Below are positions 13,646 through 56,433 of a stretch of 64,000 bases of DNA, piece by piece. A program made the position numbers and the translations under genes. The stretch comes from Orbicella franksi (taxonomy: Eukaryota), in assembly GCA_964199315.1 (NCBI GenBank), contig OZ116701.1, forward strand, positions 13,206,001 to 13,270,000. Direction: 5' to 3'. The notes beneath the pieces were generated by a model. The model searched no databases. It saw only the letters and a list, made by a program, of their open reading frames with translations, and was not told where the DNA came from. Position 1 is the first letter of the stretch, and each line of letters opens with the position of its first letter.

Positions 13646-14243
13646 TAGTTGAATCATGCAATGTATTTTATTGGCATAATTGTTAAAATTGTCTATGTTA
13701 TTATAATCTTTGACAGTTAAAAGAACTCAAGATTTTACCTTCTTAAACTTTCTTTCAGTTTGTAGTTGAAAAGGAAACAACTTTCGTCTTTCTGTGCGGC
13801 TTGACATGTTACTGCTCGGTGGTTGACACACTCTCATTGGTTTATCGCACTCTGCGGACGTTGACTTGTTTAAAAAAATTATCTTTTTGTGGACAACTCC
13901 TTAAAACTCTTCAAGAATTTTTTTTCGTAAAATCGGCCCTTACAGGTCTACAGGAACCTTAATTCCTTAATAAGGTAAGCTTTTGCTTTTATCATAAGTC
14001 TTTCCAATCTAGTCGAGAATCACCTCGGTCGTCAAAACTTTCCTTTTGTATTGAATTGTACTTTATTATCCAACTGTAGCGAATACCGTCCAAATAACGG
14101 TACAAATATACAGCGATATTGTACAGTTATTTGTACAGTAGCAAACCTGTTTGCCGGACAGGTCGGCGCGCGCACGCAAAACTGTCACACTCTACCTCTT
14201 CCACCAATAAATTTATTGACTACAGCAATTAGATAATAAATCT

Positions 14244-14383
14244 CTTATTGGATGTTGTGGTGTGTAGTATCGCTTTATCTTTTTACTCGTTGTTTGTATT
14301 TTGACTCGCCCTACGGGCTCGTCAAAATACGCCACAACTCGTAAAAATGTACAGCGATACTACACACCAAAACATCTAATAAG
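14244..14383. mobile_element. ~140-bp palindromic (hairpin) non-autonomous element
   Basis: cttattggatgttgtggtgtgtagtatcgct ... agcgatactacacaccaaaacatctaataag, with an inner ttttgac...gtcaaaa stem. Confidence 0.7.
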
Positions 14384-14542
14384 ATATAGGTCTTTTTTAT
14401 TTGTGTTTGTGACGGTCATTTTAACCACATCTGAACAGCATGTGTCCACCAGTTTCTTTGTCTGCTCTGAACATATTTACATAAATATTAATGAATATTA
14501 TCACTACTATAAAATGTTTTGCCGATAAAGCCAAAACAATAC

Positions 14543-14632
14543 AGTTTCATTTCTGCTGAAACGAAGCAAAAATGTCAAAGGGGTACCCTCATCCAGACTT
14601 TCAGTTTCCTCTATTGTTCTAATACACCCAAT
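14543..14632 (+). promoter_or_regulatory. Proximal promoter of IFI27-like gene 2: two ISRE/IRF-E motifs plus CCAAT box
   Basis: AGTTTCATTTC (14543-14553), ACTTTCAGTTTCC (14597-14609, TTTCnnTTTC) and CCAAT (14628-14632), upstream of ATG 14730. Confidence 0.6.
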
Positions 14633-14729
14633 CAAAGCTCGCCACGTTCCAATTACATAACAGAAACGTAGTCCCTCGCAATCGGTGAACTGAGAGAAAT
14701 AATTAGCAAGCAAAGCGAAAACCCTCAAG

Positions 14730-16400
14730 ATGAACTGCATATTTATTTTTTGTATTGTTTTGCTTTTCGCCTCGCAGGCCTGTGCAAATGGTAAGTGGAA
14801 TAAGTAACGTAACGTCAATTGCCGGTGAGTTTTCTATTGTCGAAATTTCAACTGTTAACTGAAGTGTTTTAGTGCCGGACAGCTGGGGTTGAAAAGCGGT
14901 GTATGACATTTGCAGACTGCAGACTGTAGACAAGGCCGCAGACTGTGGAGTTTTCAGCTAACATGGTACATTCAATTTCCATTACCAAGTACTAACCGTA
15001 AACAGGCTAACCTGTGTGCTATTAAGGCTAACCTAAGTCATATTCGGGGTAACTGGGGCGCTATTTATGCCTAAATGTAGTCCGTAGTCTATAATCTTGA
15101 GTCAGCAAATCTCATACATCTGTTGAAAAGTAATATTCCACGATGGCTTTCAACTCATTGCAGTAAAGATATTTTCGTGGACATTTAGAAGATTACATTT
15201 CATGGAAGATAGTCCACGACAATTTCGTAAACATCGATGATCATGATCAGTGCCCTGAATATAATGTCCAGCAATATATGAACTATATGCCTTCTCTGGA
15301 TCGTAGCAGTGAAAGAGAGATTTTAACAACACCATTGCGAATCACGCTTCGAGTTATTGAGACAGTTTCGGAGATCCCCTGAGCTTCAGGCATTCATCTT
15401 TTCTTTTACTTAAAGAATTTCCTGCTCGATAAGTTTCCTTGGTTTTTATGGTCGACCTTTTAGTACGTCTATTCCTGCTGCCAAACTTTTTGTAAAGTAT
15501 GCTTTTCAAATTCACCAGTGCTTGTTTGAAATGCGGCGAAATAATTTAGCTTTCATGGCAGAGCGTGAAATATAAGGTATTGCATCGTAGATTTCACTCA
15601 GAGCTTTGCGAAGACGAGTGGAACGTTTTGATAAAGCGTGATTTTCATTTTGTGGTTTGAGAAAAGCATTGATTTTTCGTAGAAAATGGTCTAAAAATAG
15701 ATCCTGACAATCTTGTGCCCAGTCCCCAGCATTCAACGACGAGTGGCTGACAAATTTCGGCTCAAAAGTACGTTACAAATAATTGGACCCTTATTTCATA
15801 TGTTGGTCAAGAAATGGATTATAATAAGTTTGATTTTAGTTCATGAGCAATAGCTACTGTAAAAGAGCAAAATCACTCTTTCTCCTCAAATGCTGGAGCC
15901 TCCAAAGTTATCAAATGATCTTATCAATGTGTCACTCTTAGTGACACATTGGTAAGATCACCTGGCTGTCACGTGAAAAAATTTCGTTAAAATAACTTGA
16001 CCTTAAAATAGTGTGTAATGTCTTTACAACGTTTCTTTTTTCAGACGAGAGTACAAATGGCGAAGAAAATGATGTATGCGTTAGCTGCTGTAGTTGGATG
16101 CACTGTAACCGTAGCTGCGTCTCGATTTGGACTAGCCTGCGTAGGCGCCTGGATAGGGTTCACAGCTGCGGAAGAAGCTGCAAACCCAATCGCTATTTTG
16201 GTCCAATGTGTGGTAGATGGAGGCGCTATGACCGCTACAATTATATTTGCAGTGCTACAAAACATTGTATACGTGGCTGGTGGATCAAGCACGAGGGCGG
16301 GCTTGGTTGTTTTCATAACTGTTGCCGGATTCGCCTTATGGTTAATGTACCCCAGAGAGTAGCTTATGGAGTTATCACTTCCTTAGCAATGCATATGTGA
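14730..16400 (+). CDS. IFI27: IFI27-like paralog 2, join(14730..14790,16045..16400). The signal-peptide exon splices into a Cys-rich alternative frame; the ISG12-like frame survives as 16057..16362 from an internal ATG
   Basis: Exon 1 MNCIFIFCIVLLFASQACAN (phase 1, g|gtaagt) and the exon 2 start DEST are homologous to gene 1, and so is the intron. The ISG12-like YALAAVVGCTVTVAA...GFTAAEEAANPIA...VLQ lies in a different frame from DEST. Confidence 0.65.
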
Positions 16401-17699
16401 TGCCAGCCAGTTGGCGTATAACCTGTTAGAACTCTAAAAAGAAAGATTCCGTTCAATTTGCATATAATGTTAGGCTTAATTTTGAAAACAGATCAGACGA
16501 CTCCAGCGTAGCCTATCGGTCGGTAACTTTGTACACATGTATCTTAGGGACCAGCAAGGGTCTATTTGTTTGTTGTTATCCAGTGGAACTCTATGAAGTA
16601 ATGAACACCAATCATCCAATAAATTTCGACCTTTTTCATGGAAATGATCATTAGCCGTGTATTTTCTCTTTTCGAGTGCCGTCTAATAAGCTGTTCACTG
16701 ACCTTACTTGCTCGAGCCTTGCTGGGGAATGTTGGCACTCGGTCGCCTCTGTACGGACATCGCTTCACTCTGTCCGTATTGCCACGACCTCTGGCCAATG
16801 TTCCCCAGTAAGGCCCCCGCGCTTGGTTAGTAGGTAGTCAATATTGCTTGTAGTCTTTGGGAAACTCCAGGTGATGTCGAATATGCATGGTCCGCAGAAA
16901 CTCATGAAAATAGCCGATCAAGAGGATAACGCCAATCTCTTTTCCTCCTGACCCATTCCGCTCGATGAGGGTAACGCGAACTTTAGGTTATTCTAGCTTC
17001 TTACAACACAGCAACTGTTGAACCCCAGTAATCTGCGACTGCACATCCGTCCTATTCAGAAATATTGAAGTAGGGATCTAACACTTGCTATACCTTGCTA
17101 ATAGCATATTGACAAACATTGACGCGCAGTGCCCAATGTCAATGCGTAGGGAAAAGTGATTAACTTGCCTAGAAATGCTTGATATATTGATGCATATACA
17201 AAAGTCTGAAATCGCTGCTGAGAGGTTGGATAAAGATTGTGGTGTGGTCGAGTTGTCACGCTTAAAAGGAGCGACGCCGATGACGGTATACCGCCAACGC
17301 GTTTCTTTGAAAAACCAGACAGACAGACAGACAAACAGGCAGCAGACAGATAGAAAAAAAATGCAGGCAAACAATAGACGGACCGCCTGTTCTCCCCCTC
17401 CCCTCCACTACCCCTCACACTAGCTCACAGCACCAAGCTGTCTGTCTGGCTGGCTGGCTGCCTACTATGGGTCAGTACTACGTCCCAGGGTCGTCTCTTG
17501 AGGTGACGGTGAAATTAATCGATTTGCTTTTTAAGGAATTAGATTACATAGATCCATACTTTACAAGAACTAACAGTAAATGGAACCTGATGGGGAAACC
17601 GCCAGATGTCATTCAAACGATAGAATGACAGAAAGCGCAGCCAACACCTGTAGCAATTGAAGGATAAGCAGGAAGATTTCACAATCACGTGAGGAATCG

Positions 17700-55200: not shown

Positions 55201-56433
55201 ACAGAAACATTTGCAACTAAAAAATGCAAACTAAAATGGTCATTTTGGTGTCGTCCTTATTTAGGCGAATGAAAAGAAAAAAGTTGTGTAAGATTCATAA
55301 AGGGGATAAATAGCTACTTTTCGCTCGCGGGTGTCAGGTCAAAACGAAATGATAAACATGTCATTGCACTCTTCCGAAAAGCTGTCTGTCACCAGTCGGT
55401 TATCATCAACAGTTTTCTGAATCGCCAGTGCTATAGCACAGTATGTCAAATATCACACGACAGACGTTCTAGGAACAATGGCTGCTCGATGATTGTTGTC
55501 GGACAAACATCTTGATTTAACATTCGTCTTTCCAATTAAAACCTTTCGAGACAACATTTTGACACATTCGGTGGAAACTGTGTCTGGCTAAATGAGAAAA
55601 AAAAGGTTGAAAACATTGTCTACTCACCAAGATATCCAAATCGAATCTCAGCCAAAGCCGGATTGGGGAAAACGAGTCTGCAATGTCCCATGTTTTGACT
55701 AAGTAGCGGCCAGCAGTTTCTGTGTTAGAGATCACTAACATTCGTAGCGCTGCTGTAGCGCCATGTTTGTGCTATAACTCGAATTTTTGTTAACTCGAAA
55801 TGTGGCATTCAACGAAACGGTATCATTTATAAACTGTAAAAAGCAGTCATTCTCATAGAACTGGCGTGAAAGAACCCTAGTAAATCTGGAGGTGAACTGG
55901 AGTAAAAGCTAGTAAATCTCGAGGTGTTTTCGGCCTCATTTCGTGAGATTGCTCCGAAAGCCTCCGAAAAGTCACATAGTACAGTGACTGGCCTAAGGCA
56001 GTAAGCACAAAAATTGTGTCCACCAACACCCTTTAGATTGCAAATTTCAAACACAATAAGGCCTAAGCACTACCGCCTCTCATCATTAAACCTTAGTACC
56101 CGCCCTCGGCTATTACACTTCTCTAGGTTGACCTACAATTTGTATAGAGCAGCGTATACTGTTGAACCACCCTTTAACTTTCTCTTGTATTTTTCAGACC
56201 TCTTGCGCTATGCAGCTGTCGGAGTAGCAGCTGGTACTGCCGCTGTGGTTGCTGCTCCACTGGTTCTTGGTGCTGCTGGTTTTGCTGGTGCAGGTGTTGC
56301 TGCTGGTTCCATTGCAGCGGCAACTGTAAAGACTGGAGGTTTGTTTGCAATGGCTGCCGGCAATGCTGCCATTGGTGGGATTACTGGAGGGATTGCAGCC
56401 TTAGGAGCAAAGATGTTTGTATGTCTCAATTAA
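52217..56433 (+). CDS. IFI27: Acidic-repeat/ISG12 protein B, join(52217..52529,56198..56433); needs a phase-0 upstream exon (47437..47493 fits)
   Basis: Acceptor ctgtag|GAA; 4-5 of the same 14-aa repeats; phase-1 donor g|gtaac joins ttttcag|AC to give DLLRYAAVGVAAGTAAVVAAPLVLGAAGFAGAGVAAGSIAAA...AKMFVCLN. Confidence 0.7.
52558..53633. mobile_element. 1.08-kb TIR element, copy 2 (same family as 38558-39694), intronic
   Basis: GAATGAGTTGCC...GGCAACTCATTC with AT duplicated at 52556-57 and 53634-35; same Penelope fragment inside. Confidence 0.85.
54738..55060. mobile_element. MITE with CCCGGGGG..GACTCC-type ends and internal 'cctaagaggtac' repeats
   Basis: cccggggggggagggactcc ... aatctcccctgggg; repeated (c)ctaa(g)aggtac motifs. 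Confidence 0.55.

Follow-up and report, generated by a model that had tools for sequence, protein, structure and literature searches.

A polymorphic 23-nt deletion in a divergent Ifi-6-16 paralog of Orbicella: probably a young allele of loss-of-function type

Genes and reading frames at the locus

The window, i.e., the whole stretch of DNA that was analysed, comprises 64,000 nt (C4:13206001-13270000 of genome assembly G000, 497 Mb) and harbors, on the + strand, gene 1 and gene 2, which share a leader exon, the splice phase, the DEST junction at the start of the second exon, the upstream region and the intron (68–74% similarity between the two introns). Labels of sequencing runs and names of matching proteins assign the DNA to a reef coral of the Orbicella complex. 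The coordinates of the features are collected in Table 1.

Table 1. Positions of the features discussed, numbered from the first letter of the window (a slash marks a splice boundary).
Feature	Position	Strand	Description and basis
Gene 1, intact paralog	2547..4355	+	Signal-peptide exon 2547-2613; exon 2 from 4005 to TAA 4353-4355
Gene 2, exon 1	14461..14790	+	5' UTR of at least 269 nt, then signal-peptide CDS 14730-14790 (MNCIFIFCIVLLFASQACAN + G, phase 1); L020 alignment and translation
Gene 2, intron	14791..16044	+	GTAAGT ... tttcttttttcag; exactly this interval is skipped in the L020 mRNA
Gene 2, exon 2 (terminal)	16045..16641	+	AATAAA at 16618-16623; L020 aligns over 16044-16641
Frameshifted reading in exon 2	16045..16400	+	DESTNGEEND (10 native residues) followed by 108 residues read out of frame, with many Cys/Arg/Trp; TGA 16398-16400
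Candidate acceptor AG (gAG/ta)	16050..16051	+	Its use would restore the ISG12-like frame behind the signal peptide (123 aa); hypothetical, from translation
ISG12-like (divergent Ifi-6-16) frame	16057..16362	+	Open; 101 aa, ATG 16057 to TAG 16360-16362
Deletion junction	16072..16073	+	ATGGTGTTTCAAAGACTACATTT (23 nt) missing between these positions; EWCFKDYI(L) lost and frame shifted; DNA alignments

In gene 2, translation starts at ATG 14730 with a hydrophobic leader of 20 residues. The donor G/GTAAGT follows position 14790 in phase 1, and the acceptor cag (16042-16044) stands behind a long pyrimidine tract. Gene 1, with its donor after 2613, splices to DESTDEGSQ in the same phase. The spliced product of the window allele of gene 2 is a polypeptide of 138 aa (MNCIF...ACAN-DESTNGEEND-VCVSCCSWMHCNRSC...CFHNCC...MHM) that, once the leader is removed, contains 13 Cys, 15 Arg, and 5 Trp, with a pI of 9.2 and a net charge of about +10. 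The ISG12-like frame, which begins at an ATG in strong context (acaaATGg), is cut off from the signal peptide by the deletion. Regarding this architecture, an earlier sequence-only reading is borne out by sequence and translation: the signal-peptide exon joins DESTNGEEND in the manner of gene 1, the departure from the ISG12-like frame comes 28 nt into exon 2 (placed there at about 30 nt), the resulting 138-aa frame with its 13 Cys is open to 16400, and the 101-aa frame from ATG 16057 is open as well.

The regions flanking these exons display several further elements. A TATA-like site is found at 14511, and upstream ATGs occur at 14491, 14514, and 14572, within 14461-14729. The only core of IRF type at gene 2, GAAACTGAAA, lies at 14599-14608; such cores are not enriched in the window, where 12 were found for 7 expected. 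Since the mRNA represented by contig L020 (see below) covers 14461-14729, both the TATA-like site and the IRF-type core fall inside the 5' UTR of that transcript. Just upstream of gene 2, at 14240-14387, there is a MITE-like foldback with 54-nt arms that are 85% complementary; its words are thousands deep in contigs from RNA libraries, which identifies it as a dispersed, transcribed repeat. The intron carries at 15916-15960 a 21-nt palindrome (95% complementary, 3-nt loop) that is also present in the L018 and L019 contigs.

The deletion, the ancestral frame and the Ifi-6-16 family

When aligned with contigs L018, L020, and L021, the window lacks exactly 23 nt after position 16072, 28 nt into exon 2, and the same gap is found in L019, a contig from another sample that is 99.8% identical to the window over 3 kb. 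In intact alleles and orthologs, DESTNGEENEWCFKDYILYAL leads straight into the ISG12-like frame. A search with this frame retrieved relatives at 98, 93, 79, 74, and 64% identity (P0003-P0007), and the intact relatives, P0004 and P0007 (XP_020620846.1) included, read SP-DESTNGE(E/G)NEWCFKDYIL(Y/F)AL... in one frame. P0004 (129 aa) derives from L020, a 933-nt JGI contig with 87–90% DNA identity, which aligns to 14461-14790 of the window and then directly to 16044-16641. As it jumps the intron, L020 represents a spliced mRNA of a related coral and proves both splice sites. Its leader runs on as DESTNGEGNEWCFKDYILYAL... in the ISG12-like frame, and the same holds for L018, L021, and XP_020620846.1. 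The exact 23-nt gap relative to intact relatives shows that the signal peptide was ancestrally followed by the ISG12-like frame as coding frame and that the deletion in the window is derived. Relative to the ancestral frame, the disabling change is this deletion, which parts the signal peptide from the frame used in L020 and XP_020620846.1; no further stops or indels were found in the ISG12-like frame of the deleted contigs, which is open in all of them.

The deletion itself is well documented. Four sampled 31-mers that span the junction are all present in each of 20 runs, which belong to 9 studies and have at least three organism labels in addition to 'coral metagenome,' and the contigs of three RNA libraries (X2, X3, and X7) that cross the site show no indel rows at the junction. 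The presence of the same junction in the independent contig L019, in these RNA-library contigs and in the 20 runs confirms the indel in other data and rules out a sequencing error; that an error of sequencing or assembly hides an intact gene in this genome is thus of negligible probability. JGI metagenome contigs were also scanned for exact matches to the deletion junction and to the junction of the spliced exons; the scans gave 0 matches and, as even the known L020 record was missed, are uninformative.

The deletion is polymorphic, coexists with intact alleles and is not fixed. In one run series (SRR31168890 to SRR31169006), deleted contigs (L019, L022, and L023) occur together with intact ones (L018, L024, L027, and L028). 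The two kinds differ at few sites (about 1–2%), which are reshuffled among recombinant haplotypes: L024 carries the intact allele on a window-like haplotype and L023 the deletion on the other main haplotype. Among ORFs in the ISG12-like frame in the protein collection, the deletion signature is seen on 7 contigs and the intact form on 13. A second junction is present in L022:1-200 (SRR31168965), corresponding to 16066-16075 of the window, where GAAGAAA/ATTTTG (GAAGAAA/ATTTTGTATG; here the slash marks the deletion) reads MAKKILYAL with the same net loss of 23 nt. It reflects either a separate deletion event, displaced by 4 nt, or a window-type deletion together with a GA>TT change.

With regards to family membership, gene 1 matches PF06140 with 57.7 bits (E 1.1e-15; gathering score 29.1 bits), and a Pfam search of the whole genome returned, besides fragments, seven Ifi-6-16 exons that exceed the threshold; all of these map to the + strand of C4, at 13.11–13.33 Mb. 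For the ISG12-like frame of the window, the Pfam search gave no PF06140 match at E<=1, and the intact orthologs of gene 2 likewise stay under the threshold (best 11 bits, E 0.43). However, an hhalign comparison of the gene 2 orthogroup alignment with the cluster paralogs yields a probability of 97.3% (E 1.9e-11, 81 columns), and by tblastn the ISG12-like frame of gene 2 is 44% identical to gene 1. Taken with the structure shared with gene 1, this profile match points to an old, strongly diverged tandem duplicate, so that gene 2 is best classified, on sequence and structural grounds, as a homologous member of the Ifi-6-16 (ISG12/IFI27-like) family despite falling under the Pfam threshold. The cluster core GFTxGGVAAGSxAA is absent from gene 2, where GFTAAEEAANPIA is found in its place, while EAANPI, VTVAASR, SSTRAGL, and VAGFALW show no variation in an alignment of six sequences, namely the window frame and five homologues that are intact. 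Since EAANPI is invariant in all intact orthologs, the divergence of the core motif is older than the deletion; this divergence, noted in the sequence-only reading, is therefore real but does not reflect decay after the frameshift.

Other members of the cluster also deserve mention. The window contains at 56224-56406 a shortened Ifi-6-16 copy that lacks an internal part of the domain, and two short fragments are located elsewhere in the cluster (G000 C4:13134378-13134491 and C4:13171302-13171379), which suggests an ongoing birth and death of cluster copies. In L021, from a more distant relative, a Pfam-positive Ifi-6-16 gene stands at 7518-7838, about 3 kb downstream of the gene 2 ortholog, whereas in the window about 40 kb separate gene 2 from the next exon of the family.

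The Cys-rich frame: composition, selection and expression

The frame entered after the deletion is open in most of the paralogs compared. Across the Pfam-matched segment, the -1 frame is stop-free in six of eight paralogs, with ORFs of 88–119 codons, and in gene 1 it is open for 99 codons (4021-4320), in line with the latent Cys/Arg-rich frame reported there earlier. Stops are few because the Ala, Gly, Val, and Thr codons that abound in this family (GCN, GGN, GTN, and ACN) cannot make TAA, TAG, or TGA when read one base early, and then specify Cys, Arg, Trp, Ser, and Gly. After shuffling, an open -1 frame is obtained in 5.6% of cases when the codons of gene 2 are the units and in 0.6% when single bases are. 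That the Cys-rich frame is open is a by-product of composition throughout the family, and the proposal that openness arises from codons read out of frame as Cys, Arg, and Trp is supported by both the paralogs and the shuffles.

The proposal that the frameshift gave birth, by overprinting, to a functional secreted peptide, cationic and disulfide-rich, possibly under a promoter of IRF/ISRE type and possibly beside a still-coding old frame, has to be weighed against this background. The signal peptide is kept, the product is Cys-rich and cationic (+10), none of the four deleted contigs has a stop in the frame, the allele is widespread, an IRF-type core is present upstream and, the stop being in the last exon, nonsense-mediated decay is not expected. 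However, the frame is just as open, as a latent one that cannot be joined to the leader, in six of seven intact Orbicella haplotypes and in the six paralogs mentioned above, and a TGA stands ahead of it in every intact allele. Among intact relatives, it is interrupted by one stop in L018, a near-identical allele, and by two in L021, a more distant ortholog, so that it is not conserved in the lineage; stops in orthologs are what the sequence-only reading itself had named as refuting a new peptide. The allele is not fixed, and the number of Cys, 13, is odd. No Pfam family matches the 138-aa polypeptide, no second copy was found by a search of its own genome, and among 5.8 billion sequences no similar protein was found apart from P0001, whose ORF was called with a start in a relative's intron. 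AF2 run without an alignment, which is a weak test, gives a mean pLDDT of 36.8 and no confident fold. Neither a spliced transcript nor a matching predicted protein was found for the new frame, and substitutions since the deletion are too few to show selection. A newborn peptide or dual coding is accordingly left without support by the compositional openness, the stops in relatives, the TGA of intact alleles and the transcript data, and we regard it as highly improbable.

Since its split from L018, the window lineage has acquired, besides the deletion, a single substitution in the CDS (CAG>GAG), which leaves no power to test selection on the new frame. For the ISG12-like frame, dN/dS ranges from 0.6 to 1.8 between species and from 0.3 to 1.3 among near-identical Orbicella alleles; the other frames give similar values, the 22–36 differences per comparison being too few to separate frames. 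Codon positions 2 and 3 are substituted equally often, in small counts. These figures suggest that gene 2 as a whole is weakly constrained and fast-evolving, so that a disabling allele could plausibly drift in it. Two variants confined to deleted haplotypes and synonymous in the Cys-rich frame (16103 and 16235) were considered and given no weight, one being ancestral in outgroups and the other a CpG transition.

Regarding expression, the spliced joint 14790>16045 was not seen in four RNA runs, which as far as known are not challenge experiments. In polyA raw reads of X24 (about 12% of the run read), 0 reads fall on gene 2, and coverage is confined to the foldback repeat. Logan contigs of X2, X3, and X7 cover the intron and exon 2 at depths of 3–12 and are unspliced across the acceptor, while exon 1 is uncovered in X2 and X3 and barely covered in X7 (depth about 2). 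As genes of ISG type, i.e., interferon-type genes, can be induced, their absence from the RNA of unstimulated samples is weak evidence. In two polyA RNA libraries, contigs begin within the intron, at 15826 and 15837, and run unspliced into exon 2 (window 15826-16435), and in the polyA runs exon 2 together with about 220 nt of intron is two to four times as deep as other intron pieces. Possible sources of these contigs are transcription from a start inside the intron, intron retention and carried-over DNA.

Such contigs bear on whether the deleted allele still makes an ISG12-like protein, the deletion altering its targeting rather than destroying the gene. Possible routes are use of the AG at 16050-16051, leaky scanning to ATG 16057, or a transcript starting in the intron and giving a leaderless protein of 101–114 aa. 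The ISG12-like frame is intact in four of four deleted contigs, the window-type and the L022 junctions both place ATG 16057 in frame with the domain, a 123-aa product can be computed for the alternative acceptor, and the contigs starting in the intron are deeper than other intron pieces and lack cover of exon 1. Each route nevertheless meets an obstacle. GAG is the least favored type of acceptor, and the one that would rescue the frame lies 7 nt downstream of the first AG, a CAG placed right after a strong pyrimidine tract; a purine at -3 of the exon 1 ATG should make leaky scanning minor; and a transcript starting in the intron would include upstream ATGs, while the unspliced contigs, with depths of only 3–12, may be pre-mRNA or carried-over DNA. 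Continued production of an ISG12-like protein is therefore considered unlikely, although it is the alternative to be taken most seriously.

Interpretation and comparison with known systems

The most probable reading, to which we assign a probability of roughly three in four, is that the window carries a young, segregating allele of loss-of-function type in a fast-evolving, divergent Ifi-6-16 paralog, the Cys-rich polypeptide being incidental. The alternative of a pseudogene, also raised in the sequence-only reading, is thereby supported, as orthologs and intact alleles show the ancestral frame and the 23-nt deletion is polymorphic. Gene 2 falls into the orthogroup of Orbicella faveolata LOC110058539; in its normal product, the signal peptide is followed by a short acidic stretch (DESTNGEENEWCFKDY) and then by a hydrophobic domain of ISG12-like type. 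With 23 nt of exon 2 lost, the ribosome would, after normal splicing, exit the ISG12-like frame and continue in the -1 frame, so that the original function would be lost in the deleted allele. If the gene is transcribed and spliced normally, an aberrant polypeptide of 118 residues with an odd number of Cys would be sent to the ER, where it would probably be degraded, or else be secreted without a role. An mRNA that terminates in its last exon should escape nonsense-mediated decay. This would be expected of the mRNA of the deleted allele, if made, since its stop is placed in the final exon, 38 nt beyond the original one.

Several observations run counter to a simple loss of function. The absence of any further lesion from the ISG12-like frame is compatible both with a young allele and with continued use. 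The deletion allele is common and is found on several haplotype backgrounds and under several organism labels; this frequency and spread may reflect drift in a dispensable gene, but maintenance by selection may account for them as well. L022 shows a second junction variant with the same net loss of 23 nt, and some transcription of exon 2 may start from inside the intron. It can be hypothesized from such observations that the deletion, with its two junctions and several Orbicella labels, is a maintained functional polymorphism that switches the product from a signal-peptide-bearing ISG12-like membrane protein to a secreted cationic Cys-rich polypeptide, to a leaderless ISG12-like protein from ATG 16057, or to both. 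This is very unlikely in our estimation; if true, it would be a natural case of recruitment of a pre-adapted open alternative frame.

Under the preferred reading of a young loss-of-function-type allele, the value of the analysis is mainly one of clean-up, as what looked like the birth of a gene is resolved into a segregating frameshift allele. A common and likely loss-of-function frameshift variant is also documented in an uncharacterized gene of an immune family in a threatened complex of reef-building corals. Because of the long stop-free -1 frame rich in Cys, Arg, and Trp in Ifi-6-16 genes, any -1 shift in the terminal exon would give a novel polypeptide that is full-length and immune to nonsense-mediated decay, and with natural carriers and non-carriers available, the fate of a raw frameshift protein could be tracked.

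The closest counterpart is O. faveolata LOC110058539 itself (XP_020620846.1, uncharacterized, 133 aa), a locus of the same type that is 91% identical in the ISG12-like frame and has both the leader and the exon 2 start, DESTNGEEN, in common with gene 2. It is intact (NEWCFKDYILYAL), whereas the window allele lacks 23 nt at that point and also differs at E/G, V/M, and Q/E sites. A literature search found nothing on LOC110058539 or on coral ISG12-like genes, and for the Orbicella species complex, background only was drawn from the literature (PMC12630909). As in overprinting and other cases of coding sequences born by frameshift, the window allele puts a pre-existing open frame behind a working start and signal peptide; unlike in those cases, no translation or fixation of the new frame, conservation of its ORF or selection on it was found. 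Like the Ifi-6-16 family (PF06140; vertebrate ISG12/IFI27 and IFI6), gene 2 would specify a small hydrophobic domain rich in Ala, Gly, and Val and belongs to a tandem cluster with seven Pfam-positive copies. In contrast to that family, its orthogroup stays below the Pfam threshold and has GFTA(A/P)EEAANPIA instead of GFTxGGVAAGSxAA in all orthologs, and its window allele is frameshifted. The allele most resembles the segregating frameshift alleles and unitary pseudogenes of fast-evolving immune families, with which it shares a short deletion in a coding exon beside intact alleles, a dN/dS near 1, and a recently duplicated cluster with fragments. It differs from them in that its out-of-frame reading is full-length, running past the normal stop within the last exon, and would thus yield a novel full-length polypeptide instead of a truncated product targeted to nonsense-mediated decay.
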